A stretch of 64,000 nucleotides of DNA from Anthoceros angustus (lineage: Eukaryota; Plantae; Anthocerotophyta). The number at the start of each line of letters is the position of its first letter. The stretch's first letter is position 1. The notes under the pieces are model-generated. The model saw nothing but the letters and a program-made list of their open reading frames with translations. It was not told where the DNA came from and ran no database searches. This document shows positions 22,258-63,036 of the stretch, in pieces. The DNA lies in contig VJWM01000254.1 in assembly GCA_010909165.1 (NCBI GenBank), positions 124,001 to 188,000 on the forward strand. Reading direction: 5' to 3'. The translations under genes and the position numbers were made by a program.

Positions 22258-24592
22258 TATATACTCGATAAACTTGGCATTATTTCGAGAATAATGGATT
22301 TTAACTCGATGATAATAAATAATATACCTATATAATTTATTATTTAATTTTTAAAAATAATATACCTATATAATAATGAATTGGAGAAGTTTGCTAAGAA
22401 TGAAGATGGCTTCGTGCTCATCCAATGATGCAAAAAAGAGTTGTAAAGGTGACGCTACTCACCCAACGACCCGTCCACAACAAGAATTTTATGAAAAAGA
22501 GTTTCTTTTCGTCTTAATCCATTCGGAGTGCTTGCGACATAGAGTATTTGAGTCCTAGTGTCTAATACTCTTTATTTTGGGAAGACAACTTTAGTTCTAT
22601 TTCTTCGGCTAAAAAAACAATTCTAGTTCAAGACTGCTATGTTGTGTACTTCCAGAATATCGTTTTAACTAGTTTTGTGTTATACATATGCGTATATTAT
22701 TAACAATTGGTGTTAAGTTTTGAAACCGCCTTAAACACCGATTTACCTCCTGGATTTTTGGGCAAGTGTGTCCAAGCTTCCAAGAACTCGGCTGGCATAC
22801 AAGTATACTTCAAATATTTCTGCATCGTGTGACATTGTAACTAACTTATACCAAGTAATAGTCATAAAAATGAAGCCAATTTTCTTTGGCACGTCCGTTG
22901 ACTAATGACCTTGCATCACAACCTTATAATATTGCATTATGACCTTGATGTGCGTCCACTACATCCCCAAGGAGTGTTATACTTTAGGGCCTACACATTC
23001 CGTCCTATACCCAAAACCCCATTTTTCAATCAATGCAACGTGCTTTCTTAGCATCCCATAGAACCTGAATCCGTTTCCATGAAAACAACCTCTAAAGCAC
23101 ATCCTCATGCACACCCGCCACCCAACATTCCTTAAGCCCTCGAAGAGTTGTTGAAAATGGAGTAGAAGGCACAACAATATGAGGGGACCTTAAACTTCTG
23201 CCGTTTGACAACCATCAAAGTCAATGACATTCTTAATTAGACCCCGCACCCAATCTCCCAAAGCACCACAGTCCGACTCCCACAATATGCTACAACCTCA
23301 TTCACAAGTACAATGTCCCATAGTGATGCGCTAATCAAAACATCTCTAGTGATAGGGCAATTCAAAACATTTCTAGCTATAACACCATAATATTTGAACC
23401 GCGGAATATACATCAAGCGGCTTTATGCATGTATATATACTCGATAAACTTGGCATTATTTCAGAATAATGGATTTTAACTCGATGATAATAAATAATAT
23501 ACCTATATAATTTATTATTTAATTTTAAAATAATATACCTATATAATAATGAATTGAGAAGTTTGCTAAGAATGATGGCTTCGTGCTCATCCAATGATGC
23601 AAAAGAGTTGTAAAGGTGACGCTACTCACCCCAACGAATTCATCCACAACAAGAATTTTATGAAAAAGAGTTTCTTTTCGTCTTAATCCATTCGGAGTGC
23701 TTGCGACATAGAGTATTTGAGTCCTAGTGTCTAATACTCTTTATTTTGGGAAGACAACTTTAGTTCTATTTCTTCACTAAAAACAATTCTAGTTCAAGAT
23801 CGCTATGTTGTGTACTTCCGTAATATCGTTTAACTAGTTTTGTGTTATACATATGTATATTATTAACAATTGGTGTTAAGTTTTGAAACCGCCTTAAACA
23901 CCGATTTACCTCCTGGATTTTTGGGCAAGTGTGTCCAAGCTTCCAAGAACTCGGCTGGCATACAAGTATACTTCAAATATTTCTGCATCGTGTGACATTG
24001 TAACTAACTTATACCAAGTAATAGTCATAAAAATGAAGCCAATTTTCTTTGGCACGTCCGTTGACTAATGACCTTGCATCACAACCTTATAATATTGCAT
24101 TATGACCTTGATGTGCGTCCACTACATCCCCAAGGAGTGTTATACTTAGGCCTACACATTGATCCTATACCCAAAACCCCATTTTCAATCAATGCAACTT
24201 TCTTAGCATCCCATAGAACTCAATCCGTTTCCATGAAAACAACCTCTAAAGCACATCCTCATGCACACCCGCCACCCAACATTCCTTAAGCCCTCAAGAG
24301 TTGTTGAAAATGGAGTAGAAGGCACAACAATATGAGGGGACCTTAAACTTCTGCCGTTTGACAACCATCAAAGTCAATGACATTCTTAATTAGACCCCGC
24401 ACCCAATCTCCCAAAGCACCACAGTCCGACTCCCACAATATGCTACAACCTCATTCACAAGTACAATGTCCCATAGTGATGCGCTAATCAAAACATCTCT
24501 AGTGATAGGGCAATTCAAAACATTTCTAGCTATAACACCATAATATTTGAACCGGCGGAATATACATCAAGCGGCTTTATGCATGTATATAC
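22258..24592. repeat. Tandem direct duplication, ~1.18 kb x2 (22258-23433, 23434-24592)
   Basis: Both copies begin TATATACTCGATAAACTTGGC and end GCGGCTTTATGCATGTATAT; differences are mostly 1-few bp indels. Confidence 0.9.
24534..24565 (+). repeat. Left terminal inverted repeat (32 bp)
   Basis: Perfect inverse match to 41548-41579, preceded by CTAT. A near-copy sits at 23381-23411 inside the tandem duplication. Confidence 0.85.
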
Positions 24593-25344
24593 GCTGAACC
24601 GGGTTCTAGATGGTCACTAAATCGCCGTTCCTGCATGTAGACATGGAGAATGTGTTCAAAATTATGGTCGAATCCACATTTTGGCTTAAAATTGCCCGAG
24701 CACACGCCAACAAGGGTATGGTGGGGACATGCCAATGGGGTTTGCACCGTCTAGCACCGATTTCAAACTCCCTTTGTGCCGGATAATGAAACCCGACGGC
24801 CTTTACATTATTCTCGCCTTATAGTGAAGGGGAACGGAAGCCAGGATTTGCAACTGGTTCCCATTTATGGTAAGAAGGTATGGAAAATGTGCTGTTTATA
24901 TAAGTGTACAAGGGTGTGCAAACTACACCGCGCACCACCGTGGGCGCTAGCATGCCGGCGCCCATCGCATGTACACCTGGCGCCGAAATCCCTTATCCAT
25001 TCCCTTTGCAGCAAATATGCCCAACATGGCCTTTTAATATCCGCTGTCAGAGGAGTAATGTCTTGTCCTGTTCCATGTTCCTCTTCACCCCAAAGAAACC
25101 AAGACATGGTATCGGCTCGAAAAGAGCTGCCAAGTTTCACGAACATTGGGTGGGCGCCACCGCTAAACGAATCCAACGAATCGAACAAAGTCATGGCAAG
25201 AAATGAAGGGTGTCAATAGGAACGGACACGAAAATGTTGTCGTGATGGGCTTAAGCATGCCACCACAAAGGGTGTGGAAAAGAGTTGCGCCTGAATTGGA
25301 AGGAGCGGACCATGAGTGGGATATATGTCGAGCTGCTCGGTCCT

Positions 25345-28300
25345 TCACTCCTCCCCGACCTGCATCGCTTTCTCCATGTGGAATAAATGCGCATCACCAT
25401 CATCCTCCCCACCACGAGGGAGTGCAGGTTGAAGATGGGGACGGAGGGCACTTAACTTCTCTTGATAGCTTTTTATCCGCCGCAGATGATGTTTCCTAGA
25501 AGTGAGATTGAACCCATAGTACACAATGACCGCCTTATGTACAAACAACTTCAACGTTGGGTGGCTTCCATGCTTTTGCACCTTTGTTGGTAGGATGAAA
25601 TTGTCTACCTCCTCGTCCCCGGTATTCTCCGACATACTTGCCCTCGTAGGCATCGGTGCCTTCGCCACTGCTGCACCAGTATGGGTCATCGGGCCAGTGC
25701 ACACTCAACACCTTTGCAACCCGTAATGCCCTGTTGTGTGTCCCTCACAAGGTGACAATAAACATACCTTTTTAATCTCCATGATGTCACCATTCATGCG
25801 CTCGACCTCTTGCTCCCGCCTCCACACTGTAAGCACCAAGTACATGTCCTGCTGAGGCACGCCTCGCAATAAGGCTTCGCCCAAGATAGCCTCCTCGAAC
25901 TCGCAGCGGTACAAGTGCTGCCGCATCTATACCACTTCCACGGACTTTTCAACACAAGGCCAATGTTATTGTCCACTATAGTTGCAATCTCCTCTTGATC
26001 CTTCCAAGTCATTCCACCACCTCCTCCTCCGCTGGTTAACATATGTGGAAAGTTTCAAACCCTTCCTTAAGTGCTCTACTCCTTCCCGCAAAGTGAGCTT
26101 CCATCACGCTTTCTTGTCCTTGGCCTCAGAGCTAGCAGGTTGTGGGTCCTATCTCAAAGATTTGGAATAAAAGACAAGAACTCCAGCCCATCTTCCTGCT
26201 TCCCATAACGGTGAGGTCGAGTACATCTTACAACGTAACTTTACCCCCGCCGCTTTTCCTCCCGTGATTTTGAATTGGTGTTGGAATGATAGATTGTTCA
26301 CCATAACAGCCTTTTAAACTTCCGAGCTGCCTGCTTTCAACGGCCGACGAAGAACGGAAGTCCGGAACCTCGGTCAGACCTTCACTGGTTTGGCGTGAAC
26401 GCCTTGGTCAATATATCCGCATAACGGAAGAGTTTTGGCCTCTTTGTGCTTCAAATGCTTGGAGAAACACGAGAACATTTGGTCAACTGGTCATGTGTGT
26501 GACCGACAAGAAGGAACCCCACCTTCACTTTCTCAAATGTCCCCATCTCCACGAGCATATTCGGATAAGCAAACAAAGAGCTTGATTCTTGTTCTCCGAC
26601 ATGTGTTGTCCAGCTTGCAAATATAGAACCTTGGGAAGTAAGCCAACATATGTGTATCACATCTTGTATAATGCATATGGTTAAATTAGCATCATCAAAT
26701 TTATGAGTGACACGCCTGCCGTGAACGTGTGATTGTGAATCATACACCCCACCACATGGACGGTAACACGGCTATCTTCCTTTAGCTCCTTAGGCCATCT
26801 AAGTATATGCGGTAAAGATGTTTTTTCTCGATCCATACCATCGATACATAACAACATGTACTTGTGAGGCTCGGTGTATCCTTTCGCTCGATGTTTTGTC
26901 AACTTCTTCCGCTCCTCCATAAGCTTTATGCGATGTTTGTTCAATGCCTCCGATATATATCCGCCATACAACCAAATGTCATGTCGTTGTCCATGAAATA
27001 TATACCATCATTCACACGACCCTCCCCACTAACGCCTCATTTCAAATGCAATAAGGGTCGACGCCATTATAAGTCCGGGGTCTAGGTTTTGTCCACCGAG
27101 GGGCAAGGGCATCGACCCAACTCGAGAGGTCAACCCCTAAACCGAACCTAGGGTTCCGGGTTATCCCAGGCATATTGAGGCCCTCAATGGTCCTCAACGC
27201 TAGGGCGCCGAACGCTACGAAATGTCAAGGCGAAGTGTCCGGGCCACGCTCATTCGCCTTCAACTCATGGCTGCAGGCCGCCAACCCCTTTCCCTGCTTC
27301 CTCCTCCCCTTTCCCATCCCCTTCCACCCTTCCACCAAGGGCGCCGCATGCCGCGCTCTCCCCTCCTCGGTCGACCAAGTATTCTCCGACATACTTGCCC
27401 TCATGTCGGTTGCGCCACCTGCACCAAGTATGGGTCATCCACACCACCTTTGCAACCCGTAATGCCCTGTGTGTCCCTCACAAGGTGACAATAAACATAC
27501 CTTTTTAATCTCCGATGTCACCATTCATTCTCGACCTCTTGCTCCGTCTCTCCACACTCTGGTAAGCACCCAAGTACATGTCCGTTGAGGCACGTCTCGC
27601 AATAAGGCTTCGTCCAAGATAGCCTCCTCGGAACTGCGGTGGTACAAGTGCCTGCTGCGGATCTATCATACCACTTCCACGGACTTTTCAACACAAGGCC
27701 AATGCTATTGTCCACTATAGTTGCAATCTCCTCTTGATCCTTCCAAGTCATTCCACCACTCCTCCTCTGCGTTAACATATGTGGAAAGTTTGCAAACCCT
27801 TCCTTAAGTGCTCTACTCCTTCCCGCAAAGTGAGCTTTCCATCCTTTCTTGTCCTTGGCAGTAGAGCTAGCAGGTTGTGGGTCCTATCTCTACATTTGGA
27901 ATAAAAGACAAGAACTCCAGCCCATCTTACATTTCCCATAACGGTGAGGTCAGTCTTGTTTACTCGGATAACGGTAACTTTACCCCTGCAGTTTTCCTCC
28001 GCGTGATTTTGAATTGGTGTTGGAATGATAGATTGTTGACTTAACACTTTAAACTTCCGAGCCCACTGCTTTCAACGGCCGACGAAAGAACGGAAGTCCG
28101 GAACCTCGGTCGGGACCTTCACTTACGGGTTTGGCGTGAGCCTTGGTCAATATATCCCATAAGGAAGAGTTTTGGCCTCTTTGTGCTTCAAATGCTTGGA
28201 GAAACAAGAGAACATTTGGTCAACTGGTCATGTGTGGCCAAGAAGGAACCCCACCTTCACTTTCTCAAATGTCCCCATCTCCACGAGCATATTCGGATAA

Positions 28301-31300
28301 GCAAGCGCTTGATTCTTGTTCTCCGACATGTGTTGTCCAGTTGCAAATATAGAACCTTGGGAAGTAAGCCAACATACGTATGTATCACATCTTATAATGC
28401 ATATGGTTAAATTAGCATCGTTCAAATTTGCGTAGTGCGAGATCTTGTGAGCGTGTGATTGTGAATCATACACCCCACCACATGGACGGTAACACGGCTA
28501 TCTTCCTTTAGCTCCTTAGGCCATCTAAGTATATGCGGTAAAGATGTTTTTTCTCGATCCATACCATCGATACATAACAACATGTACTTGTGAGGCTCGG
28601 TGTATCCTTTCGCTCGATGTTTTGTCAACTTCTTCCGCTCCTCCATAAGCTTTATGCGATGTTTGTTCAATGCCTCCGATATATATCCGCCATACAACCA
28701 AATGTCATGTCGTTGTCCATGAAATATATACCATCATTCACGACCGACCTCCCCACTAACGCCTCATTTCAAATGCAATAAGGGTCGACGCCATTATAAG
28801 TCCGGGGTCTAGGTTTTGTCCACCGAGGGGCAAGGGCATCGACCCTAACCGCCTCGAGAGGTCAACCCCTAAACCGAACCTAGGGTTCCGGGTTATCCCA
28901 GGCATATTGAGGCCCTCAATGGTCCTCAACGCTAGGGCGCCGAACGCTACGAAATGTCAAGGCGAAGTGTCCGGGCCACGCTCATTCGCCTTCAACTCAT
29001 GGCTGCAGGCCGCCAACCCCTTTCCCTGCTTCCTCCTCCCCTTTCCCATCCCCTTCCACCCTTCCACCAAGGGCGCCGCATGCCGCGCCTCATCTCCCCT
29101 CCCCGAGGGCGCCGCATGCCGCGCCCCGCCCACCAAGGGCGCCGGCGCCTCATCTCCTGCGGCCCCGCATGCCGCCTCCTCCCCGAGGGCGCATGCCCTC
29201 CTCATCTCCCCTCCCGGCGGCAGCATCGGCCCCGCCTCCTCCTCTCCACTGCGCATTCTAGAGAACATGCCCCGCTTCCTCGACCAAGGGCCGACCGATC
29301 GTACCTCGACCAAGGGTCAACATCCACCATCACAACATACCACCGTGATCGATGGCCCACCGTGACGCCCAACCTTGCCCCTTTATACCATATCGGAAAA
29401 CGGTGTGGCGATATACCTTGATCCGTCACGATCCAAAGGTTCGGATGTTGAACTTTAGACCGCAAAGAGAACATTTGGTCAACTGGTCATGTGTGTGACC
29501 GACAAGAAGGAACCCCACCTTCACTTTCTCAAATGTCCCCATCTCCACGAGCATATTCGTATAAGCAAACAAAGTAGCTTGATTCTTGTTCTCCGACATG
29601 TGTTGTCCAGCTTGCAAATATAGAACCTTGGGAAGTAAGCCAAAGATACGTATGTATCACATCTTGTATAATGCATATGGTTAAATTAGCATCGTTCAAA
29701 TTTATGAGTGACACGCCTGACTTGAACGTGTGATTGTGAATCATACACCCCACCACATGGACGGTAACACGGCTATCTTCCTTTAGCTCCTTAGGCCATC
29801 TAAGTATATGCGGTAAAGATGTTTTTTCTCGATCCATACCATCGATACATAACATGTACTTGTGAGGCTCGGTGTATCCTTTCGCTCGATGTTTTGTCAA
29901 CTTCTTCCGCCTCCTCCATAAGCTTTATGCGATGTTTGTTCAATGCCTCCCCGATATATATCCGCCATACAACCAAATGTCATGTCGTCCATGAAATATA
30001 TACCATCATTCACGACCGACCTCCCCACTAACGCCTCATTTCAAATGCAGAAAGGGTCGACGCCATTATAAGTCCGGGGTCTAGGCGATTGTCCACCGAG
30101 GGGCAAGGGCATCGACAACCTCGAGAGGTCAACCTAAACGCGAACCTAGGGTTCCGCCAGTGGTCTATTGAGGCCCTCAATGGTCCTCAACGCTAGGCGA
30201 AACCCGGCCACGAAATGTCAAGGCGAAGTGTCCACCGCCATTCGCCTTCAATATGGGCGGCATGCGCCCAACCCCTTTCCCTGCTTCCTCCTCCCCTTTC
30301 CCATCCCCTTCCACCTTTTCACAAGGCGCATGCCGGCGCCTCATCTCCTCCCCGAGGGCGCATGCCGCGCCCCGCCTTTCACAAGGGCGCCGCATGCCGC
30401 GCCTCATCTCCCTTACCTCCCGCATGCCCGCCCCGCCTCCCCGAGGGCGCCGCATGCCGACGCCTCCTCATCTCCTCCCCGAGGGCGCATGCCGCCTCAC
30501 TCTCCTCCAAACTCGATTCTAGAGAACATGCCCCGCCTCGACCAAGGGCCGACCGATCGTACCTCGACCAAGGGTCAACATCCACCATCACAACATACCA
30601 CCGTCGTCATCGATGGCCCACCTCCGTGACGCCCAACCTTGCCCCTTTATACCATATATCGGAAAACGGCGCTGAGCATACCTTGATCTCGCGATCCAAA
30701 GGTTCGGATGTTGAACTTTAGACCGCAGAGAACATGTTGAAAATCGATTGATTTGGGTATCTTCACGCTTGAAGTTCGCCTCCCATAGTCTCGTAAAGTA
30801 CGCATACGAAATATACCGCAGCTTTTGCTCCATGCCACATTTGTATTGTGTCCACACTTCTAGTTTGGTGAAAGTGTCGAAGATTGTAGACTTCAACATT
30901 AGGCCCGCCCCGCCCCTCCCAGGGCGCCGCATGCCGACGCCTCCTCATCTCCCCTCCCGGCCGGGCGCCGGCATGCCGGCGCCTCACTCTCCCCTCTCCT
31001 CCACCCGATGGCGCATTCTAGAGAACATGCCCGCCTTCGACCAAGGGCCGACCGATCGTACCTCGACCAAGGGTCAACATCCACCATCACAACATACCAC
31101 CGTCGGATCGATGGCCCACCGTGACGCCCAACCTTTGCCCCTTTATACCATATCGGAAAAAATGTGGGGAGTCTGATGATCCGTCTGATCCGGATGTTGA
31201 ACTTTAGACCGCAAAGAGAACATGTTGAAAATCGATTGATTTGGGTATCTTCACGAAGTTCTCGCTCCCATAGTCTCGTAAAGCACGCTGCACGAAATAT

Positions 31301-31950
31301 ACGCCTTTTGCTCCATGCCACATTTGTATTGTGTCCACACTTCTAGTTTGGTGAAAGTGTCGAAGATTGTAGACTTCAACATTAGGCGCCGCCGCCAATT
31401 GCGTAAATGTTGCATCCATCCATGCTATAGCGCCTAATGCATGAGATGATTTCACCCGGCTTGGCTTGCTACCATCCCATGGTGAATTCAACAAGATCAC
31501 CCTTCACCTCCTCATACCTTTCCGACCCTATGCAATACACCCTTCAAGGATTTCGTGCAACACTTGATTGGAACCGGTTTCTGTGAAAGTACATGCACTG
31601 TCTTTGCCTTCGATCCATGGTCGGGCCTTACAAGGGTCTCTGGAATGTCTCCGCCTGACCTTCCCAACATAAGAAACCTTTGCCTCTCTTCTTGAAACCC
31701 TCCTCGAAAGTCGTTGAATACATAGTTTGTTGCAACACGGTTTCCGGAAATCTTGCGTAACCGTGTCCGCCTCTTCTTCAAGGAGACACCAGCTACGCAA
31801 ACGAAACCTGTCGCTCACCGCAATGTCTCCGACATTGGCTTCGATGATAGGACACCGCAGCGAGGAGGGAACGGGAGGATGGGGAACGTTGCCATCGCCA
31901 GCAATATCGCCCCCGATGCACCAAACACTCCACACGGAGGGGCAAAGAGA
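25345..31950 (-). pseudogene. DUF7869-like putative DDE transposase, frameshifted and internally triplicated (core copies ~26380-27060, ~28100-28800, ~29466-30060)
   Basis: Fragments in order: N-terminal CCNKLC (~31.7 kb), FTRLW...NRFSTCSLC, YMLLCIDGMDREKTSLPH, NDANLTICII, YLQLDNTCR(E)NKN (~28315-28350), FEKVKVGFLLVGHTHD, then a C-terminal region with EGKYVGEY and VIVYYGFNLTSRKH ending at 25345. Confidence 0.7.
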
Positions 31951-32949
31951 CCTCGCATGGCACGCTCATTTCGACGGGCGGGCGACATCGCTCGCCTCTC
32001 GGGCTAAGTTCCATAGCCGCATACAAGTTCAAGTTCCGGCGTCGGTGGCACATAGGGGGGCACGAATGGTTATGAGTCCTTCGCCATCCCGAGCTCGCAT
32101 ACGATTTTCACGAGAACAAGGTGAAGCATCGTCATCCACAACGACGATTACCACTCATCGCCATCCGCTTGCCTCGGGAATTTCCAGCTTGTCTACATAA
32201 GCTTGTGTTCTCACACACAGTTGTCCACAAAGAGCATTCAAAACTCGGTCCCTCATCAAAGCAAAGTTCGCGCTTTGGCCAAATAGATCAATGCTCCTTT
32301 CACCGCATGTAGGTCTCTTTGTGAGGGCAAGACTGATGCCAACAAGTTCCCGCCATCCGCAGAGTCAAGCCGCATGACACCCACTATGAACAACGCCCAC
32401 GAGACAAGGGACTCGAACGTGAGGCGACGCTTTATGAAAATTACCGTGTCCTCATCGGTATGGGTGGAGTGGAGCATGGGAAGAGACGCGCCGGTGAACG
32501 CGATCCCAAAGACCGTGAACAAGGAGGAATACACAAGCCTCGGCACAATCATATTAGACATAGCGAACTATCGCGGATGCCTCGGAGTGGCATCTTCCAA
32601 AGACCGCGGAGAAGATTTATCAAGCGGATCCGACGCCGCTATTCACAAGCGTCATAAAGTTGCGGCTTTTGCCGTTAGGGATCGGAAGGCTTTAATGTAT
32701 GTAAGTGCAACACGTGGAAAACATGGGCACCGTGAAATAAAATCGTGGCAAAGATAGCTGCCACACCAAATAAGGGTAAGTGGAAAAACAAACACCACAA
32801 CGGTGGCGACATCACCGCTTTAACCCTTGCCCCGATTTTTAAGCGCTTCCTTCCGTAATGGAGCGCCCATCACGCTCACCGGCACCGAGTTGCGCCCACC
32901 GCAAACCAAGGAAGGCCTCGAATTGCGCCTCCAAGCCGCCAGGTGAGGG

Positions 32950-35900
32950 AGGCCGGCCGTGCGCCATTCGTGACCGCAGGAGGTGCGCCACGCCTCCTTT
33001 TGCTGCTTGAGGAGATTTGGTGTCTCACCGTGCATCCGTTGCTTGTGCGTGGCAATGGCAAGTGGGCGCAAAGAAGGAATTGGCGGTGATGGAGAAGAAA
33101 CCCGCCGCATGTGGAGAAACCAAGCCAAGAGACCAAAGGGAAGAAGGCGATCACACCCGCAAAGACCGCCATGGAGTGGATGCACACCTTCGAGCCGACC
33201 GGTCTTCCAATTCTAAGGCGCCACTTGAAGGCGAACTGGCACGCGTTGAGGGGCGACGGCCCGAACTCGGATCCGGATCGGCAAGGTGAGCACAACGAAG
33301 GGAGCAGGTGAGGGAAATCGTGGATGGCAAACTCACGTAAGATACCGCCGCAAATTCTAATCCTCACCTTTTACGCTTGAGGAGACTGCTCAATTGCGCA
33401 GACACTAACCGATTGATGAGACAATTGTCCGAGAAGGACGGCTTTTGACACAGAGTGAACTGAAAGACACAATGTGGTGTGGACACCAATGTTGAAATTA
33501 TGGATTTATGGCCACAACGGTGCTTTGCCGAATCGAGAGCTGTATGATTTGTGGTATGGGCAACTTTGATAGAAGCGGAAGGAGATCCGGATATTCAGGT
33601 CTTGGTGACTTCGAAGCCTTATGGGTTTGAAGCTTTGCCACGAGTCAAGATTACAGTGTTCGTGTTGAGCATAGCAGTTTGGTTAGCAAAAGTGTGAGCC
33701 ACGTGAATTGTCTCTCAAATTCGGAAGCTCTTCGACACGGGATTGTAAGTGTGTCTTTGGTCATTGATTTTGAAGTTTTGGAACATCTTTGCATCCACTT
33801 AACCACTTTTGGAACTTCTAACTCGTAATGCAAGGAATTTTTATCGATGCTTGTGTGAAGTGATAACAACTTCTATCATCAATCACCGTCGCGAGATGTT
33901 CTTTAGAAGGACCAGGGCTGGGCTGTCTGATTATGAATTGGAAGGAGATGAGGACGAGGCCGAGTATGGACCCTCGGATGAAGAGGATGGCCCTATACCG
34001 GAGCTGCTTGGCCAAACAGATGACGAACTGTCGGAGGAGGATGGTGATAACAACTTCTATCATCAATCACCGCGAGATGTCCTTTAGAAGGACCAGGTCT
34101 GTCGATTATGAATTGGAAGGAGATGAGGACGAGGCCGAGTATGGACCCTCGATGAAGAGGATGGCCCTATCGAGTTGCCAAACAGATGACGAATGTTGGA
34201 GGAGGATGGTGATAATGGGGTGAGGAGGATGATTGCGATTTCCATGCCGGGTGCCAACGGTGCCTTACAATCCGGTGAAGACATGGGTCGCAGCATGGAA
34301 TTGCCCGCGGGAGAACACGGGTTGGGCACCCCTCACAGTGGTTTATATCGGTATGAAGGCATGGGAGGAGAAGGGCGCCGATGCCGCCCTTCCTGACCCG
34401 CGCAGAAGGCGGCATCCCAAAGACTATGGGGGTGGGGCAGGCACCAGAGTCGTGGAACGGAAGAGGGCGCCGCATGCCGCGCCCGCTGGCCCCGGGAGGG
34501 GGCGCATGCCGCCCTTCCGTGCCTTTGATGGAGGCGGCGCCGCATGCCGGCGCCCGACCGGCCTTGGGATGAGAGGGAGGCGCCGCCGCCTCCCCGCCTT
34601 GGGATGAGAGGGAGGGCGCCATGCCGCGCCCTGTGCCATGGGAAGCAGAGGTGGCGCCGCATGCCGCGCCTCCCGTGCCATGGGAGAGGGAGGCGCCGCA
34701 TGCCGGCGCCTCCTCACGGGAGAGGCGCGCATGCCGCCCCGCCGTGAACCCAAGATGGTGGAGGCGATCGGAGTAGTGGAAGCGCAAGCGGAGTTCGACA
34801 TAGCTGGTTTGGGGGAGGTCAACAAATGTGGAGGCAAGAGAATTTGAGAAGGAAGAAAGGCAAGCGCAGCAGAGCGCCGATACGATATTCACTATGCATG
34901 TTGCATCGATGGGGAGAGGCCGGAGGCCATTGCGCGCCATTCGTGATCGCGGGGCCACGCCTAACCTGCTGCGGCTTGAGGAGATTTGGTGTCTCACCGT
35001 GTAATCCGCTTTGCAGGCTGTGCAATGGCAAGTGGGCGGCAAAGAAGAAGGAATTGGCGGAGTGGAGAAGAAACCCGCCGCATGTGGAGAAACCAAGCCA
35101 AGAGACCAAGGAAGAAGGCGATCACACCCGCAAAGACCGGCGGAGATGTGGATGCACACCAAAGTTCGAGCCGACCGGTCTTCCAATTCGCTTGAAGGCG
35201 AACAGGCACGATGTTGAGGGGCGCATGCCGCGCCCGAACTCGGATCCCGGGATCTCAAGGTGAGCACAACGAAGGGAGCAGGTGAGGGAAATGGATGGCA
35301 AACTCACGTAAGACAAAGCCGAAATTCTAATCCTTCACCTTTTACGCTTGAGGAGACTGCTCAATTGCGCAGACACACTAACCATTGATGAGACAATTGT
35401 CCGAGAAGGACCGGCTAGTGCGTAACTGAAGAAGACAATGTGGTGTGGACACCAATGTTGAAATTATGGATTTATGGCCACAATGGTGCTTTGCCGAATC
35501 GAGAGCTGGATTGTGGTATGGGCAACTTTGAAGCGGAAGGAGATCCGGATATTCGGTCTTGGTGACTTCAAAGCCTTATGGGTTTGAAGCTTTGCTGTCG
35601 GACTACGGTGTCTGTGTTAGTGCTTGGTTAGCAAAAGTGTGAGCCACGTGAATTGTCTCAAATTCGGAAGCTCTTCGGATTGTAAGTGTGTCTTTGGTCA
35701 TTGATTTTGAAGTTTTGGAACATCATTGCATCCACTTAACACTTTTGGAACTTCTAACGCGTAATGCAAGGAATTTTTATCGATGCTTATGTGAGGTGAT
35801 TACAAGTATCATCAATCACCGTCGGAGATGTCTTTAGAAGGACCGTGGTCCTGACTATGAATTGGAAGGAGATGAGGAGGCGAGTATGGACCCTCGGATG

Positions 35901-38750
35901 AAGAGGATGGCCCTATACCGGAGTTGCTTGGCCAAACAGATGATTTAAGGAGGAGGATGGTGATAATGGGGTGAGGAGGATGATTGCGATTTCTCCATGC
36001 GGTGCCAACGGTGCCTTACAATCCGTGAAGACATGGGTCGCACAGAATTGCGTGGGAGAACATGGAGTTGGGCACCCCACCGGGTTTATATCGGTATGAA
36101 GGCATGGGAGAGAGGAAGGCGCCGGCATGCGGCGCCTTCTTCGGACCTCCGCGCAGAAGGCGGCATCCCAAAGACTATGGGGGTGCGCAGCACCTGTGAG
36201 CCGTGGAACGGAAGAGGGCGCTGCATGCCGGCGCCCGCCGCCCCATGGAGGGAGGCGCGCATGCCGCGCCTTCCGTGCCTTTGATGGAGGCGCGCCGCAT
36301 GCCGCGCCCGACCGGCCTGGAGGAGGGCGCATGCCGCGCCTCGCCCTGTGGATGAGGAGGGCGCGCATGCCGGCGCCCTGCCATGGGGAAGAGAGGCGGG
36401 CGCCCATGCCGCGCCTCCCCGCCATGGGAGGAGAGGAAGGCGCCGCATGCCGCGCCTCTGGGAGGAGGGCGCGCATGCCGCCCGTGATCGATGGTGGAGG
36501 CGATCGGAGTAGTGGAAGCGCAAGCGGAGTTCGACAATGCAGCTTGGTATGGGGGAGGTCGCCAACAAATGTGGCCGAAAGAGATTTGAGAAGGAAGAAA
36601 GGCAAGCGCAGCAGAGCGCCGATACGATATTCACTATGCATGTTGCATCGATGGGGAGAGGCTGGAGGCCTCCATCCGTGATGAAGATTATTTGCGAATA
36701 TCGAGAGCGCACGAAGAAAGTGGTTCCAAATGCTTCCGAAATTAGAGAATTTAAGGCCTGCATCCTTTCTTTCTCCGATGCATGATTCGGATTGTGGATG
36801 AAGGCATGGACCAACTACAGCTCGAGTTATTTCAAAGGTAGAGTGGAGGCCATTGCGCGCCATTCGTGATCGCGGGGCCACGCCTAACCTGCTGCGGCTT
36901 GAGGAGATTTGGTGTCTCACCGTGTAATCCGCTTTGCAGGCTGTGCAATGGCAAGTGGGCGGCAAAGAAGAAGGAATTGGCGGAGTGGAGAAGAAACCCG
37001 CCGCATGTGGAGAAACCAAGCCAAGAGACCAAGGAAGAAGACACCCGCAAAGACCGGCGGAGATGTGGATGCACACCAAAGTTCGAGCCGACCGGTCTTC
37101 CAATTCGCTTGAAGGCGAACAGGCACGATGTTGAGGGGCGCATGCCGCGCCCGAACTCGGATCCCGGGATCTCAAGGTGAGCACAACGAAGGGAGCAGGT
37201 GAGGGAAATGGATGGCAAACTCACGTAAGACAAAGCCGAAATTCTAATCCTTCACCTTTTACGCTTGAGGAGACTGCTCAATTGCGCAGACACACTAACC
37301 ATTGATGAGACAATTGTCCGAGAAGGACCGGCTAGTGCGTAACCGATGAAGACAATGTGGTGTGGACACCAATGTTGAAATTATGGATTTATGGCCACAA
37401 TGGTGCTTTGCCGAATCGAGAGCTGGATTGTGGTATGGGCAACTTTGAAGCGGAAGGAGATCCGGATATTCGGTCTTGGTGACTTCAAAGCCTTATGGGT
37501 TTGAAGCTTTGCTGTCGGACTACGGTGTCTGTGTTAGTGCTTGGTTAGCAAAAGTGTGAGCCACGTGAATTGTCTCAAATTCGGAAGCTCTTCGGATTGT
37601 AAGTGTGTCTTTGGTCATTGATTTTGAAGTTTTGGAACATCATTGCATCCACTTAACACTTTTGGAACTTCTAACGCGTAATGCAAGGAATTTTTATCGA
37701 TGCTTATGTGAGGTGATTACAAGTATCATCAATCACCGTCGGAGATGTCTTTAGAAGGACCGTGGTCCTGACTATGAATTGGAAGGAGATGAGGAGGCGA
37801 GTATGGACCCTCGGATGAAGAGGATGGCCCTATACCGGAGTTGCTTGGCCAAACAGATGATTTAAGGAGGAGGATGGTGATAATGGGGTGAGGAGGATGA
37901 TTGCGATTTCTCCATGCGGTGCCAACGGTGCCTTACAATCCGTGAAGACATGGGTCGCACAGAATTGCGTGGGAGAACATGGAGTTGGGCACCCCACCGG
38001 GTTTATATCGGTATGAAGGCATGGGAGAGAGGAAGGCGCCGGCATGCGGCGCCTTCTTCGGACCTCCGCGCAGAAGGCGGCATCCCAAAGACTATGGGGG
38101 TGCGCAGCACCTGTGAGCCGTGGAACGGAAGAGGGCGCTGCATGCCGGCGCCCGCCGCCCCATGGAGGGAGGCGCGCATGCCGCGCCTTCCGTGCCTTTG
38201 ATGGAGGCGCGCCGCATGCCGCGCCCGACCGGCCTGGAGGAGGGCGCATGCCGCGCCTCGCCCTGTGGATGGGGAGGGCGCGCATGCCGGCGCCCTGCCA
38301 TGGGGAAGAGAGGCGGGCGCCCATGCCGCGCCTCCCCGCCATGGGAGGAGAGGAAGGCGCCGCATGCCGCGCCTCTGGGAGGAGGGCGCGCATGCCGCCC
38401 GTGATCGATGGTGGAGGCGATCGGAGTAGTGGAGTAAGCGGAGTTCGACAATGCAGCTTGGTATGGGGGAGGTCGCCAACAAATGTGGCCGAAAGAGATT
38501 TGAGAAGGAAGAAAGGCAAGCGCAGCAGAGCGCCGATACGATATTCACTATGCATGTTGCATCGATGGGGAGAGGCTGGAGGCCTCCATCCGTGATGAAG
38601 ATTATTTGCGAATATCGTAGAGTTCGCCAAGAAAGTGGTTAAAAGCTTCTCAAATTAGAGAATTTAAGGCCCGTGATCCTTTCTTACTCCGATGCATGAT
38701 TGGATTGTGGATGAGGCATGGACCAACCACCGCTCGAGTTATTTCGAAAG
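32950..38750. repeat. Tandem ~1.92 kb repeat x3 (~32950-34920 diverged; ~34921-36843 and ~36844-38750 near-identical)
   Basis: Near-identical ORFs recur 1917 bp apart (ORF ends 35267/37184 and starts 35913/37830). Each unit has an acidic DYELEGDE...EYGPSDEEDG segment and a GCATGC-palindrome array. Confidence 0.9.
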
Positions 38751-41220
38751 GTAGGGTTGAGGAAGGTGTCTACTGCATGATTGACCCATCGATGCGACAT
38801 TCAATCTATAGATCGGAATAAGTTTAGAGCAAAGAAGTATGTGATGGGAGTGCTCGGGGGCAATCACACCTATGCAGCGATGAAGCATCCGGACATATCT
38901 CCATCAAGGCCAGATTCCAATGGATGGAAGCCCATGTCTATTGTGGGCTCACTTTACAGGAGATGAGGGTTCTGGCCACAGACCACAACACCATGTCTGA
39001 CAAACGGAGGAAGATGACTTTCATTGAGCAAGTTCGGTATCTGCGAGATGAGTTGCGATAGCAAAGAGATGGAGTCAATATGACCATGAACTGGAAGTTC
39101 AACCTATAAGGTGCTAGGCTTGATAGATGATGATGAGGCCGAGAGGATGAGCGATAAGCAAAACAAGGTCGATAATCGCACACATATCCTTTGCATCGCC
39201 AAACTTGAGGGAGAGTGTGGGAAAATGTCGATAAGATCTTCACGAAGTGGAGGCCATGGAATTGCTGTAACAAGCCAAACATGTTGCCGCAGGACAAGCA
39301 AAAAGAGCAAGGGAAACTAAGACTGGATGAGGCGAAGTCGGTGGACCAAAGTTTTGAAGCCAAAGGACATGCAAGGAAGCCTTGGCGAAGTTTTCGTGGT
39401 ATTCCACCGGGTGAGACTGCCAAAAATGTTGATCGTCACCGAGAAGGTCGACAATATCCTTTGCATCGCCAAACTTGAGGGAGAGTGTGGGAAAATGTCG
39501 ATAAGATCTTCACAGTGGGAGGCCATGGAATTGCGAACAAGCCAAACATGTTGCCGCAGGACAAGCAAAAAGAGCAAGGGAAAGCGGAGGCTGCGGATGA
39601 GGCGAAGTCGGTGGACCAAAGTTTTGAAGCCAAAGGACATGCAAGGAAGCCTTGGCGAAGTTTTCGTGGTATTCCACCGGGTGAGGCGGCAAAAATGTTG
39701 ATCGTCACCGAGAAGGTCGTGACAGTCTCATAGACCTCAATGGTATGGCCAAGGAGATCACTCTTGGAAGAAACTACATGTGATACAAGTGGCTATGGCG
39801 AAGCATCTAGGCTGCAATTCATTCGAGATGGTGAGGAAGGAGTACCGGTGCACTCAACGGATGAAGTCATTGCGATTTCGACCGCTCAAGGGAAGGTGAG
39901 TTTCGCTGTTCTTACCAGTATAGAACTATTGGAGGGCGCCGGCATGACGGCGCCCTCCCTTTCCCTATTGTCCCCGCAATCTGACTTTCGGCAACCTCAC
40001 TTGTTTTGTGTTATTTTGCAGCAAGTTAAAGATGTTGAAGACCTGAAAAAGCTACCAGAAGATTTCCAGGCTTTTATATTAGAGGTCCACACATGGAAAG
40101 GGCTGGAGGATGAGCAGAGGGCACTTGCGGACATGGACATGGAGGAAGGGCTGCAATCTTTCATCGCCCAAAACAGAGGAGTTAGTGAAGTATCAAGTGG
40201 TGCGCAGAGATGTGGCGTAAATGAGAGGGTTTCTTTGAGTCAAGTATACAACTGGTGATGGATGTCCCTAGGGATTCAACAAGGGAAGTATGATGTCAAA
40301 CTTGAGCAAAGAAATGGCAAACATATTTCATTCCTTCCATGACATGACAATGTGCGACGAGATCGTAATGATAGTAATGCATGGTGTGGAAGAGCCGCAT
40401 ATTGTCGTGAGAGTATGAGGAAGTGGTGCGTGTGGAGGCATGGTCTCATTTGTTTGGGACAAAACTAATATGCACAATGACCAAGGAGGCTTTGACATCG
40501 TGGAGTACATCATGGGTGGGGTGACCGCACGAGCAAGAAGACAAAGGTGTCCATGTCAATACCTTGCGGGCTCTTTCAATAATGGGCGAGCGGTTATTGC
40601 ACACGACGTGGTGAAGAAGTTATTATACATGTCGCTGGACAAGCTGGTTGTTTCCGCGTATCAGAGGCCACTGGGTCTAATGATGAAGTTGATCAAGAAC
40701 TTCTCGAGAAGGAGATTGGATATTAGATGCATGTGCGGTGGAGTGGAACAACGACATTAGCGGCACTCCTTTGTGGCCGAAATTGCATTGTGGAGGTTGA
40801 CAAACGTGGCAGTTCATTCCGCAAAGGATTCATGGCTATGAAGTTTTACCGGACGCAGAGGAGGAGTTGACCCATGAGCCACACCGCCGAGGCCCCACCC
40901 ACCTGGGCAAAAGAATTGAGCTTGTCCGAGAAGGATGCATCCCAGTGCCCGTAGTCCCACTTGGGTTGAGCAGATGAAAGAGAAGACGGAGATCTTATAG
41001 ATGATCGCCAAGAAACTGCCTCGCATTGTGGCATCCCGACTATTTGGAGAAGAGCAAGGAGGATGCGGTCGATATCACGGAAATGCTATGGTCGAAAACG
41101 ACAATTTCGAGGATCCCGAGGATGCTCGACCAAGGACGGAAGTTGTGTTAGATAGCGTGTCGGGACAATGCCTCCCGAGCCACGCCTCAAGCCGAGAATC
41201 CCCTCGAGGGAAGTGAGTCT
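38640..41220 (+). pseudogene. ParB/Srx-like N-terminal domain plus beta-class N4C/N6A DNA methyltransferase-like gene (frameshifted, with an intron)
   Basis: VLGGNHTYAAMK (GGNH at 38856-38867) followed by VYCGLTLQEMRVLATDHN. Motif-IV-like LVMDVPR at 40261-40272. Motif X-I-II region YQRPLGLMMKLIKNFSxEGDWILDACAxSGTTTLAALLCGRNCI..EVD (~40655-40800, two frameshifts repaired) parallels N6_N4_Mtase QKP..L...LI..STNPGDIVLDPFAGSGTT..AA..LGR..IGIE. Confidence 0.7.
39185..39722 (+). repeat. 270-bp tandem duplication inside the ParB-MTase gene
   Basis: TCCTTTGCATCGCCAAACTTGAGGGAGAGTG occurs at 39187 and 39457. Confidence 0.85.
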
Positions 41221-41547
41221 AGTTTAGTTTTGAAAGTACCATAACCTGCATGGTTAGAACTAAGGCGCCGCATGCCGCGCCTGCTTAAGCCTCCTTCTTT
41301 AACTATGAGTGACATTGTTATTCGTTTTGTCAAGGATGACTTCTATTGACGGCTACAAAATATCTGTAGATCTCGTTTCACACCTATAAGACATTCGTCG
41401 TGCACCGTACGAGAGGTCCAGAATGCACCAACATACCCACATTCGTGTGAAAGCACCCACAAACGGGATGCGCAACCTCAAGCACTAAACTTGCAATGGA
41501 CCGGATGGGGAACCCGAATTTGGTCCCGGGTTTTCGAAAGCGGGTTC

Positions 41548-41579
41548 GTATATTCCGCCGGTTCAAATATTATGGTGTT
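41548..41579 (-). repeat. Right terminal inverted repeat (32 bp)
   Basis: GTATATTCCGCCGGTTCAAATATTATGGTGTT followed by CTAT. Confidence 0.85.
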
Positions 41580-44500
41580 CTATGAGCTACTCAAAACAAT
41601 CTAACGGGCTATACAAAATGCTCTTATTGATGGGTCACATTCAAAATGAAGTATCCTGGGTATGCAAATTAACCAATGCCCACAATAATGGCTTTAGAAC
41701 AGAGTGTGGAATGAAATGTATGAGGTTAGGGTTAAATATTATGAAACGATAAAGGTTAAATAATTAATGATATAAAGTTGAAGTAAATAATCATTCAGTT
41801 TGCTATAATCTGTCCGAGGGGATTTGGTTCATTTTTTTTTGGGTGTAATTCTTACTGATTGGAATTAAGAAAAAATAGCACATCTAGGAGAATCCTCCTA
41901 AAGGTATGAAAAACAAATGAGCTCAACTACACTAGACTAGTAAAAGTCAAGGTTGGTCGCGTTAACAGGTATCTTGACTTGTGTGCCATCCGAGAAATTT
42001 CCTAAGAAGGTGTGCCCTCCTCTTAAGTTGTGTGACCATCCACTGAACGAGATTGACCAGCAAATCTGCGTCCACCTGGACCTAAACTTGGTGAAGGGTG
42101 GCTGGCGTTAACAGCTAACCAATGTCCAATACTCTGTTAGCTTCATCATTGAGTGTCAACGGCAGGGATTAAGCGTTGATGGAGACCTCTTGAACAGATC
42201 ATTCACGTTCAGCACTATTTCCGGAACGATCTTGCAAGGACAGACTAAAGGTTGGGTGATTCGCAACAGCGTTCTGGCTTTCTCAACAAAGAAGGCCGCT
42301 CCCCAACTAGGGCTTTCGGCCTTGGCCAACTCCCAATCTCATTCCACGAGCTCCGCGACCTTGGGGCTGGCCAGCTCGAATTTAGGGAACATCAGAAGCC
42401 GAATTTCCTTTAAGGAATTGGTATCCTTATGTACATTGATGTCGATCAGTGTATCTAACTCGACATAGAACCAGTGAAGTTCCTCTGGATTCCTGCACTT
42501 AACCATAAAGGTGGGAGCAAAGGCTAATAGTGCCCTGACCAACTCCTCGGTCTATCTGGCTCCTTCCAGGTCAGTAGAACAACTAGCACACATCCAATTG
42601 TCTTCAGCGAATTATGTTTCCACTGGATCTGACAGGCTGGTCCTTACGATCTCCACCGCTTCATAGGCGGCATCGAGTTCAATTTTGGTTGTGCATGGTT
42701 CATAGACGGTTCAGTTTGAGAGAATTGAATGGAGTCAAGTCACAGTGATGCTCTGTGTGGTGTTGGCAGCTGCATTTCTAGAGAGAGTGGAGGTTTTCAG
42801 ATATAAGAGCTGAAGTAGGCTGATTCATCTCATCTCTAGGTTGTAAAAGGAGTGCGGTGTTGAACAAATTTTGCCGCAATTTGGTTATGGAGTTGGTTTT
42901 GCAAATTGTCTTCTTGGAATATCTCAACTAAATAAAGATGGAGAGGTATTGGGGAGGTGATACTCCGCATCTTTGTGTTCTAGTTATACTATTTCTGTTT
43001 GCCAGCATTTGTAATAGTAGTGAATTATCACCTGGTGTCACCTGATCACTCGCTATGGCTGTAGGCAAACCCTTGTCATGTCCGTGCCGTAGCCTTGGCA
43101 GGTTAGGATGCAAGAGCTTGAACACACTCCGCTCCATCTCATGTTGGACAACTTTGGACTGGTCGGAATGCCTCATCAACCTACTGCTCAAACAACCAAG
43201 ATGCCTCGTCTTCTGCCAATGAGTCCCCTCTCAAGCCCCTTCCTGCTGATCCTCAATTGTCCACCTCTGCTGGTAGACTCAATAGGATGTGGTCTAGCCA
43301 TTACAAGAATCACAGGTGTTTTATAACACATTTTACAATGTAATTTACATTGTCCTCACGTTGCAAAAATGGACATTTACACGTTTGTAGAATAACAGCT
43401 TAATGAGCGCTATTACTGCCAGTGTTGTGACATCTGTGGACATCCTCCTCATCTCCTTCCCCAGCGCCCAAGAAAACTAGGGCTCCCCTTTCTCACTCCC
43501 CAGCAGCTGCCGAGTACTCCATTCGACGTGTAACTAGTTGTCTGTCATTGCCCCAATGCAGGAAAATCAAGTTTGAAGCGCATGCGCAGGCCGAAGGAAG
43601 CAGCACCCTGTCTGCGGAGATGCTTCAACAAATCCCCAAGGACCTTGCACCTGTAGCCCCTAGCCTAGACCTCCTTCCTCACTCACTTGCTCGTAAAACA
43701 GGTCATCTTCAACTCTCTCAATAATGCAATGGACAAGTGGCATCAAACCATCGCGGAAGTCAAAGACAACTTTGCTGGTATTCTATCTAGAAATTGCTTT
43801 TGCACTGCGCACCGCGTAAGGGCATCTTTGTAAATTCCTTTGCCCATTATAACGCGACAAGATCACCAAGAAAAACAACCTTCAGACAGGGCAGCCCATA
43901 TCGTTGCACACGTGAATTGAGCCTTTCGATTGCAATCGCGAAGGAGAAGCGAGCAAGGGCTGAAGCGCTTCCTTGTTTTTTGTTTGCTATTGCTATCAAA
44001 TTCTACCCAAATTCACACTCCTCTCCAACACCCGGGGATGCATGAACGAGCATACTTAATGTGCAAAGTCCTGGGGCCATATTTCGTACCACAAAAATTC
44101 ATGAGCACCGTGAGGCATAGAAGAAGAAGAAGAAGAATTATATTTAAGTCCTCTAAGGACGGATTTCCGTCATGGGACTTGGTACTTAACAACTTCTACC
44201 ATGATGTGCCTAAGCTACTTGCACCAAGGGCATCCCACTTACTTTATACACCCCATCTAAGTACCGATCTAAGCTCAGGATGCTTAATCATCAAGGGCAT
44301 CCACTCCCTTTACGCACCCCAATCTAAGCTCAGGATGCTTAATCACGACGTTCTTATAAATGTGTGTCCATTTGGCCTAAGCCATTTGGACACACATATG
44401 GTGGAGCATGTTCGGCCCTAAAACGGGAAGTCGAAGCTAAGAAGCTAACAGCATCGTCGTCCCTAAAAACAGTTTCCCGAGGGATTCAAATCCCGAGAGG

Positions 44501-48974: not shown

Positions 48975-49342
48975 GACTGCTGGTTGTTGATCATTCTGGA
49001 TATGGGTCTCCAGACTGCTGGTTGTTGCTCATTCTGGAGATGGGTCTCCAGACCGCTGGTTGTTGCTCATTCTGGAGATTCTCTCCAGACTGCTGGTTGT
49101 TGCTCATTCTGGAGATGGGTCTCCAGACTGCTGGTTGGCTCATTCTGCAGATGGGTCTCCAGACTGCTGGTTGTTGCTCATTCTGCAGATGGGTCTCCAG
49201 ACTGCTGGTTGTTGCTCATTCTGGAAATGGGTCTCCAGACTGCTGGTTGCTGCTCATTCTGGAGATGGGTCTCCAGACTGCTGGTTGCTGCTCATTCTGG
49301 AGATGGGTCTCCAGACTGCTGGTTGTTGCTCATTCTGGAGAC
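48975..49342. repeat. 38-bp minisatellite, about 9-10 copies
   Basis: Unit CTCCAGACTGCTGGTTGTTGCTCATTCTGGAGATGGGT, head-to-tail with no spacers. Confidence 0.9.
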
Positions 49343-50560: not shown

Positions 50561-50982
50561 CCCAAAAGAACAGCGTCTGGCATACATGTTAAGCTAGGGA
50601 TAAAAGAGATGGGCGTCGGCATGCCGGTGCCCACCTGGTAGGCACATGTTCAACAAAAGTAATTGGTCTAAAACACTGTCATTGATGCAGTCTAGGTTGA
50701 AAGGTCTTCCATTCCGGTTTGAGTCTTTGGAGGGCATTGCCCATGCACGTCATCCATGACCACTTGCAGTTCTTTCAGTCGAGCATGCTCCGTGTCTTCA
50801 AAGTTGTCATTTTCCTCCATCGCATTATCTTCGTCGGTATGGTCTTCTTCCGCGCCATTGTCAGAGTCATTTTGTGGCCAAACAACATCCAGGGTCTGCT
50901 GCCCATCGTCCAGGATGTCACGGTATTCTCCTTCCTACAATTAGTTGCCAAACGAACAACCTACGACTGAGACCCATCCTTT

Positions 50983-52520: not shown

Positions 52521-52549
52521 AGTTCAAAATTACAAGAGAAGACAGAGTG

Positions 52550-62900: not shown

Positions 62901-63036
62901 CTCTTCTTCCATCCGTTTCGATTCGCTATAAACAAAATCTTGGAAAGGTTTTGGCGAGCTTTCAAATCCTCAATGTCTCCGGTTTACGCAAACAGCACGG
63001 TGGTCGACGAACTCATTGGCGATGGAGTCGCGGTCG

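Follow-up and report, generated by a model that had tools for sequence, protein, structure and literature searches.

A giant, decayed and probably Sola1-type transposon with a methyltransferase-like accessory gene in a window of Anthoceros angustus

We analysed a 64,000-nucleotide stretch of the Anthoceros angustus genome (contig VJWM01000254.1, positions 124,001 to 188,000 of the forward strand), called the window below, with positions counted from its first letter. The interval 24534-41579 is, taken as a whole, best explained as one giant insertion of the Sola1 transposon superfamily, now dead, that contains a methyltransferase (MTase)-like accessory gene as a component of its family together with a set of GC-rich palindromes; we put the probability of this reading at about 0.85. 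The evidence comes from the ends of the element, from the core of its transposase and from the recurrence of the same divergent gene pair in other copies.

Ends, transposase and gene pair of the element

The element measures 17,046 bp and is bounded by two 32-bp terminal inverted repeats (TIRs), the left one starting with AACACC (AACACCATAATATTTGAACCGGCGGAATATAC; 24534-24565, plus strand) and the right one at 41548-41579 (minus strand). The arms are complementary at 32 of 32 positions, and the 4-mer CTAT, read directly, abuts both of them as an apparent target-site duplication (TSD; 24530-24533 and 41580-41583); a 4-bp match of this kind has a probability of ~1/256 by chance. Direct reading and complementarity thus bear out the first-pass annotation of this DNA, which had proposed a perfect 32-bp TIR pair with flanking CTAT. 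Searching with the terminal 22-mer at up to 3 mismatches returned three occurrences in the window, as compared to 0.00 expected from shuffled sequence. The third of these (23381) was considered as the end of another element and rejected, being part of a tandem duplication of the left junction: the repeated unit, on the plus strand, comprises ~1.12 kb of left flank and the ~57 bp with which the element starts (22257-23437 versus 23433-24591, ~97% identity by blastn), the paired segments being 22257-23380 with 23433-24533 (96.6%) and 22500-23437 with 23669-24591 (97.3%). Owing to this ~1.18-kb duplication, the left junction is present twice, each time with CTAT and the start of the TIR.

A pseudogene for a Sola1-type Asp-Asp-Glu (DDE) transposase occupies 25348-31965 on the minus strand, as delimited by Pfam, by tblastn and tblastx with the transposase of a relative from another sample (contig L002, described below) and by tandem repeats. 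Two minus-strand stop-to-stop pieces match the Pfam family PF25273, DUF7869 (29429-29656, E 1.8e-15; 26454-26771, E 8.3e-9), in agreement with the DDE-like transposase that had been noted inside the TIRs from the open reading frames (ORFs). There are three copies of the catalytic core (26388-26845, 28081-28571 and 29480-29867, all minus strand), produced by tandem duplications of ~1.73 kb and ~1.27 kb, and all three contain frameshifts or stops, so that none encodes an intact DDE transposase; at the position of the second aspartate, two copies read LQAGQ and one reads LQLDN. The broken state of the transposase concerns the activity of the main copy and not its membership of the family. A C-terminal module lies at ~25350-25750 (minus strand), and the N-terminal region was placed at ~30600-31965 (minus strand) by a motif match made by eye only.

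As a separate observation, the C-terminal module downstream of the DDE core is conserved ('…RPFWIAKVISVH…HVHWWRT…YEGKY…'). It occurs at 52963-53517 (plus strand), at 25538-25744 and 27268-27477 (minus strand) and at residues ~348-569 of the L002 transposase; it had no match in Pfam and recalls a small barrel like that of chromatin readers.

Because DUF7869 is unmentioned in the literature searched, we tied it to a named superfamily by direct comparison, using as references the profile of DUF7869 and a single stretch of published Sola1 sequence. The latter is from Sola1-1_Ec32 of the brown alga Ectocarpus, a 21,549-bp element with AACCG…CGGTT termini, a 4-bp TSD and, as its best blastp match, Sola1-1_PPa (PMC12477816, supplement). 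A 64-aa stretch of its transposase (…VQVDNTVAENKNN…MMVGHTHIQIDQ…) matches DUF7869 at E 1.5e-21, covering those positions of the profile that the window pieces also cover, and its alignment to a window transposase piece has E 1e-7; the ENKN...GHTH spacing is common to both. The bounding TIRs and the 4-bp TSD (one instance) of the window element are likewise those of a Sola1 transposon, and 4-bp TSDs are also made by Sola2 elements (PMC3627910). Within plants, Sola1 has been catalogued in Physcomitrella and Capsicum (PMC9033089), and a survey of 1007 plant genomes found recently active Sola clusters to be rare (PMC12973397). Because the DUF7869 core is the published Sola1 core, the TSD is 4 bp long and Sola1 is already present in plants, the element appears, by sequence comparison, to be a Sola1-superfamily transposon and not a new family.

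The accessory gene lies inside the TIRs on the strand opposite to the transposase, and the same head-to-head pair recurs elsewhere. L002, a 9,089-bp Logan contig from sequencing run SRR33208241, carries a 619-aa minus-strand ORF that matches DUF7869 (E 1.7e-49, 168 bits) and, diverging from it on the plus strand, a series of ORFs that ends in an N6_N4 MTase. By tblastx it is collinear with the window: its segments 4278-4430, 4918-4995, 5427-5540 and 6075-6176 map to 38915-39067 (51% identity), 39768-39845, 40016-40129 and 40608-40709, respectively, and its transposase maps three times, corresponding to the triplicated core. L002 and the window have no similarity at the DNA level, and for that reason we treat L002 as an independent member of the family. 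Run SRR33208241 holds at least four diverged paralogous copies, and as a population the members of this Sola1 family in its genome are apparently younger and better preserved.

Two further copies are present in the window itself. Copy 2 (50611-54316, minus strand), traced by blastn and by tblastn with the relatives, is an inverted, internally deleted member of the same family with 65-70% DNA identity to the main copy. Its MTase-like gene (52151-51034, minus strand) abuts the C-terminal half of a transposase (52313-53601, plus strand) in the head-to-head order of the main copy, and because the two abut in this way we regard copy 2 as an internal-deletion derivative. Pfam recovered N6_N4_Mtase on 51174-51362 (minus strand, E 5.8e-5) and, weakly, DUF7869 on 52250-52513 (plus strand). 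The left end of copy 2 is cut off next to a fragment of a Copia integrase (50255-50464) and its right terminus (…AATAGTGGTCTT, ending at 54316) is tentative; it yields no second TSD. Copy 3 (62167-62829, minus strand), located by tblastn with L002 and two relatives of the accessory protein (P0002 and P0005) and by translation, is an MTase-like fragment that has diverged further and whose CDLPRGL motif is intact; it has no DNA-level similarity to the main element and no adjoining transposase match before the end of the window. With the same divergent pair in both L002 and copy 2, the proposed co-linkage of the two genes is borne out, and the MTase-like gene is a stable component of the family, not a nested insertion.

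An accessory gene with a methyltransferase-like domain

The accessory pseudogene consists of a conserved N-terminal domain (38802-39106, plus strand) and of a linker plus beta-class amino-MTase-like domain (39750-40881, plus strand). Taken singly, pieces of this gene matched nothing significant in Pfam, PHROGs or PDB sequences, and its 174-aa ORF had no match in a word-indexed homologue search; later mapping showed the N-terminal part of this ORF to lie in another frame than the conserved blocks. An exhaustive search of 1.8 billion proteins matched the stretch 40419-40757 to P0002 (185 aa; 39% identity, E 1e-5), itself an N6_N4_Mtase protein (PF01555, E 5e-15). The continuation of P0002 ('HEGDWILDGCAGAGST…GRNVLSVDID') matches the frameshifted window, first in frame 1 as 'EGDWILDACA' and then in frame 2 as 'WSGTTTLAALLCGRNCIVEVD', and P0002 as query retrieved P0003-P0005. 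A profile of the family alignment run against the PDB returned TTHA0409 (4e-9), followed by the bdelloid N4CMT, M.RsrI, DpnA, CcrM and M.MboIIA, and NCBIfam likewise points to a CcrM-type MTase. Through P0002, PF01555 and the fold of the family, the divergent plus-strand gene with an MTase-like domain that the first-pass annotation had described is substantiated.

The AlphaFold2 (AF2) model of P0005 is of moderate confidence (predicted local distance difference test score (pLDDT) 53.5; predicted template modelling score (pTM) 0.58; core pLDDT 70-86). Its top Foldseek matches are beta-class amino DNA MTases only, over 255-280 columns: CcrM (6pbd, E 1e-11), M.MboIIA, M1.HpyAVI, M.RsrI, M.PvuII and N4CMT. 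The domain is thus predicted to adopt a Rossmann MTase fold in the beta-class order, with motif IV N-terminal and motif I C-terminal. Motif I, which binds S-adenosylmethionine (SAM), reads DGCAGSGST or DGCSGSGST in the relatives and aligns in the PDB profile comparison to motif I of TTHA0409 and N4CMT; it is frameshifted in the main window copy. Among the relatives, the ratio of nonsynonymous to synonymous substitution rates (dN/dS) is 0.22-0.28 in the MTase part and 0.067 in the N-terminal domain, values that are rough, since dS is saturated. Because dN/dS is low among the relatives, we consider the accessory protein to have been kept by selection.

The motif-IV position follows directly on a predicted strand (residues 83-89 of P0005) and reads DLPRG in L001-L004, CDLPRGL in copy 3, DVHRGF in copy 2 and DGCP*GF in the main copy (~40245-40265, plus strand). 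The peptide 'HLFCVILQQ', considered as a degenerate motif IV, was rejected, as the mapping of L002 sets motif IV ~150 nt downstream of it. According to PMC4738411, canonical motif IV is [DNSH]PP[YFW], the aromatic residue of which stacks on the target base. This canonical form occurs in no family member seen, which makes MTase activity doubtful. On the question "METHYLTRANSFERASE?", the domain is, as far as sequence goes, MTase-like by homology and not an established active amino-MTase, and its catalysis is doubtful. DLPRG as a catalytic motif in place of [DNSH]PP[YFW] may be a new detail.

These features raise the alternative of a pseudo-methyltransferase without catalysis, in which case the accessory protein would leave no base modification and would serve the transposon only by binding DNA or SAM, as a regulatory or targeting factor. 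Consistent with this, DLPRG, DVHRGF or CDLPRGL, without an aromatic and with one proline, is found in all seven sequences examined; the canonical mechanism requires [DNSH]PP[YFW] with aromatic stacking, and inactive MTase domains borne by transposons have a precedent in DIRS1, whose domains are described as probably inactive (both in PMC4738411). Retention of motif I (GxGSGST) and of the fold under selection would suit such a factor as well. By contrast, the first aspartate and one proline are retained and the motif is invariant and not decayed, which would fit an unusual but active site as well, and the motif-IV loop has a pLDDT below 50 in the model. We regard a dead enzyme as a serious possibility, with odds somewhat short of even. 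The suggestion that the enzyme marks or protects its own element is the same speculation as that made in PMC12477816, and it is weakened by the non-canonical catalytic motif.

The N-terminal domain ('…KKYVMGVLGGNHTYAAM…', '…WMEAHVYCGLTLQEMRVLATDHN…'; in-frame stop at 39059-39061) is homologous to the best-conserved part of an intact 488-aa ORF of L002 and of another relative, P0006, with 38-51% identity. It had been called ParB-like, and that claim divides: the block is real and conserved (51% identity to L002), and its identity as ParB emerged from no search. The pattern seen by eye (VLGGNH...; ...EMR..ATDHN) is compatible with a ParB/Srx N-terminal domain; no search supports it, and profile searches of Pfam (to E 10), NCBIfam, PHROG and the PDB gave no match. 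Comparison by hhalign with the ParB of plasmid pBCJ2315 returned a probability of 0.4%, its best local alignment falling on the 'ENxMRE' box of ParB. An AF2 model built from four sequences has a pLDDT of 48, at which a Foldseek search of it is meaningless, and the search for phage or plasmid ParB-MTase fusions that could serve as a reference brought up nothing but plain MTases or an MTase joined to a restriction endonuclease.

Palindromes, decay and surroundings

The element contains GC-rich palindromes with a consensus of about GGCGCC-GCATGC-CGGCGCC, many of them in arrays of ~36-41-bp units identified by Tandem Repeats Finder (TRF) and repeat scans. A census of the whole window with the 18-mer GCGCCGGCATGCCGGCGC at up to 3 edits gave 32 matches, 29 in the main element and 3 in copy 2, with none in the remaining ~43 kb (shuffles: mean 0.23, maximum 2). 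In the main element, a left subterminal palindrome (GGCGCTAGCATGCCGGCGCC; 24943-24962) lies ~410 bp from the end and a right one (41264-41280) ~300 bp from the end. Further sites and arrays occupy the left half (27340, 29072, 29108, 30325-30463 and 30923-30982) and the centre (34466-34709, 36117-36455 and 38034-38372).

The three palindromes of copy 2 (50612, 51899 and 53911) are positional homologues of sites in the main copy: 24943 pairs with 53911 (blastn offsets predict 53914), 39934 with 51899 and 41264 with 50612. All three are single sites outside arrays, and two of the three are symmetric and subterminal. Two of the three pairs are 82-90% identical (18 of 20 positions, for 24943/53911, and 18 of 22) as compared to ~48% in the 90-bp flanks. 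That two diverged copies have an element-specific palindrome at corresponding sites, both near the ends and in the interior, may be a new detail, and we infer that the palindromes are putative cis-acting sites bound by a protein, either the transposase or the N-terminal domain of the accessory protein. A plant cis-element of the RY/B3 type, considered as a candidate for the GCATGC core, was rejected, as the CATGCA core is missing and the palindrome is specific to the element. Because the SRR33208241 relatives L001-L005 lack the motif, the palindrome appears to be specific to the family in this host.

Could the palindromes instead be non-functional, GC-rich minisatellite or hairpin-prone filler spread by tandem duplication? 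Most of the 29 main-element sites do lie inside duplicated blocks and TRF arrays, and L001-L005 have none. Against filler stand the three single, non-array sites at homologous positions, two of them far better conserved than their flanks, the absence of the motif from the other ~43 kb of the window and the symmetric subterminal location of two sites, which is the usual one for transposase-binding motifs. We therefore hold this explanation to be unlikely.

Decay of the main copy is extensive. The central region (32961-38762) is tandemly duplicated in units of ~1.0-1.9 kb that are 83-98% identical by self-blastn, TRF and the palindrome census, and a 270-bp tandem duplication (39184-39719) lies just upstream of the MTase-like domain. 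In-frame stops interrupt the accessory gene at 39059-39061, ~40257 and 40416-40418, and its frame changes at ~40700-40730 overlap and so cannot be introns. Both genes are pseudogenes in the main copy, which is a dead, non-autonomous relic. Stripped of its duplications, the element would measure roughly 9-10 kb, like L002. The duplication of the left junction and the internal 1-2-kb duplications together suggest a locally duplication-prone region, or are possibly an effect of hairpin-forming palindromes.

Elsewhere, the window (GC content ~47%) contains an apparently intact amino-acid permease ORF (1246-2769, minus strand; PF13520, E 3e-37), an apparently intact, intronless F-box/Kelch ORF (3874-5061, plus strand) and an apparently intact Copia-type gag ORF (56095-57075, plus strand), with Copia fragments at other places; its permease, F-box/Kelch and Copia content give it the look of nuclear DNA from a land plant. 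At 49016-49339 there is a tandem array of about nine ~38-bp repeats (TGCTGGTTGTTGCTCATTCTGGAGAT…), and one inverted copy of the repeat (50514-50539) is found 1.2-1.5 kb away, inside a Copia integrase-like ORF. A long GC-rich simple repeat (62973-63259), with (AR)n as its translation in several frames, adjoins copy 3.

Weighing the assignment and comparison with known systems

Several observations weigh against the reading of 24534-41579 as one dead Sola1 insertion with its own accessory gene. Firstly, a single complete copy with a single instance of a TSD is known, and searches for further copies gave neither an empty site nor a second TSD. Secondly, the Sola1 placement is based on the core profile, a short pairwise alignment and the length of the TSD. 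Thirdly, the relatives of the accessory protein, sought among ~15 billion predicted proteins, all come from the one run SRR33208241 (Logan contigs L001-L005). Fourthly, the palindrome is supported by the two window copies only, L001-L005 having neither the palindrome nor DNA similarity to the window. To these are added the points given above on the accessory protein: the ParB searches and the N-terminal model, the middling confidence of the P0005 model, the saturated dS and the missing canonical motif IV. A metagenome scan returned 0 matches for the terminus of the element and 0 loci for the profile of the accessory N-terminal domain, and the exact window ORFs and the flanking F-box ORF have no record in the public gene index.

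The gene pair might also be accidental, the MTase-like gene deriving from a separate element or from a captured host gene by nested insertion or Pack-type capture. Tandem duplications have heavily rearranged the interior, and nested transposable elements (TEs) are frequent in giant transposons (Ectocarpus paper, PMC12477816). We nevertheless judge this origin very improbable, given that L002, copy 2 (65-70% identity) and Ectocarpus all have the head-to-head pair, that no separate TIRs or TSDs surround the MTase gene and that purifying selection acts on this gene across copies of the element. Least tenable is the proposal, made in the first-pass annotation, of a possibly new DNA-transposon family or superfamily with a novel gene pair. 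In its favour, the collections searched yielded neither the AACACC termini nor the exact TIR, and accessory relatives are scarce (2 matches among 1.8 billion representatives, 4 and 1 in word-indexed searches). Against it, such scarcity in protein databases is what one would expect of plant TE genes that lack annotation, the core of the transposase is the same as that published for Sola1, a 4-bp TSD is in keeping with Sola, the same layout is published for Sola1-1_Ec32, and Physcomitrella and Capsicum are already on record as hosts of Sola1.

Under the preferred reading of a dead Sola1 insertion, the history of the element might run as follows. While the element was active, its DDE transposase, with an RNase H-like DUF7869 core, would have acted on the 32-bp TIRs, excising and reinserting the element, and a 4-bp staggered cut in the target, as inferred from the superfamily, would have been repaired into the CTAT duplication. 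The diverging second gene would have supplied a protein with the conserved N-terminal domain and a C-terminal, beta-class N6-adenine (N6A)/N4-cytosine (N4C) MTase-like domain, which may have methylated DNA by an atypical loop or served solely as a DNA- or SAM-binding regulator. The palindromes near both ends and the internal arrays may have bound the transposase or the accessory N-terminal domain. After insertion, the interior and the left junction would have been tandemly duplicated over several rounds, with both genes gaining frameshifts or stops.

A more speculative proposal, in which we place little confidence, is that the accessory gene is a self-recognition module of a plant-lineage Sola1, its N-terminal domain binding the palindromes and its DLPRG MTase-like domain either marking the element's own DNA in an unusual way or binding SAM without transfer, so as to regulate transposition or evade silencing by the host. 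If true, this would give the transposon an epigenetic device of its own, targeted in cis and with a novel variant of the active site. Two handles for experiment are the invariant DLPRG (do these proteins methylate?) and the conserved subterminal palindrome, a candidate binding site. The main copy itself, being dead, has no consequence for its host beyond that of repeat DNA.

The MTase-like domain resembles the beta-class MTases (CcrM, M.RsrI, M.MboIIA, M.PvuII; PF01555) and the horizontally acquired bdelloid N4CMT in its fold and motif I region, and it has in common with beta-class MTases an N-terminal layout of the form 'GD...hydrophobic strand-D'. The family differs from them in its DLPRG motif IV, in an N-terminal fusion specific to eukaryotic TEs and in being carried by a transposon rather than by a restriction-modification system or as a host gene. 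A eukaryotic adenine-MTase-like domain joined to an N-terminal ParB-type module of phage origin is also described for the chlorophyte and chytrid proteins that combine ParB and helix-turn-helix (HTH) domains with a Dam-type MTase (Iyer, Zhang & Aravind 2016, PMC4738411). In the available text of that paper these belong to the Dam/DpnM clade (group 2) and no transposon context is stated for them, whereas the window family falls in the beta-class N6_N4 clade and is transposon-borne.

Closer in setting are the giant Plavaka/KDZ and Mutator transposons of red algae, which carry PAG2 (an N6A MTase with SET) and PAG3 (ParB with a 2-oxoglutarate (2OG) oxygenase) (Bostrychia, bioRxiv 10.1101/2025.02.11.637652). 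They are likewise giant DDE transposons with DNA-modification-type accessory genes, and in Plavaka tandem inverted-repeat arrays beside a ParB-domain accessory gene, proposed as self-binding sites, parallel the palindrome arrays of the window element. They differ in transposase superfamily, in domain combinations and in having several accessory genes rather than one.

The nearest counterpart is Sola1-1_Ec32, in which a gene for a ParB-like and N4C/N6A MTase protein lies on the strand opposite to the transposase (PMC12477816, Genome Biol 2025). It and the window element both have a DUF7869-type Sola1 transposase, a 4-bp TSD, termini that start with AAC, an MTase accessory gene on the opposite strand and giant size (21.5 kb versus 17.0 kb). 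They differ in their TIRs, which are 282 bp and imperfect in Sola1-1_Ec32 but 32 bp and perfect here, and in their hosts, a brown alga as opposed to a plant-like genome; moreover, the window copy is a pseudogenised, internally duplicated relic, unlike Sola1-1_Ec32. A ParB-like domain is reported in the 1104-aa accessory protein of Sola1-1_Ec32, whereas the N-terminal domain of the window family is not detectably ParB, the two proteins being compared by description. Sola1-1_PPa of Physcomitrella, the best blastp match of the Sola1-1_Ec32 transposase, is a Sola1 element in a land plant; at ~47%, the GC content of the window would seem too high for Physcomitrella. The combination of Sola1 with an MTase-like accessory gene is thus already published for Ectocarpus, and the superfamily is already known from plants. 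Transposons with DNA-modification-type genes of their own are a recent observation, so far made in brown, red and green algae, and the locus described here, with its two companions in the window and its relatives elsewhere, adds a plant-like host lineage to the Sola1 version.

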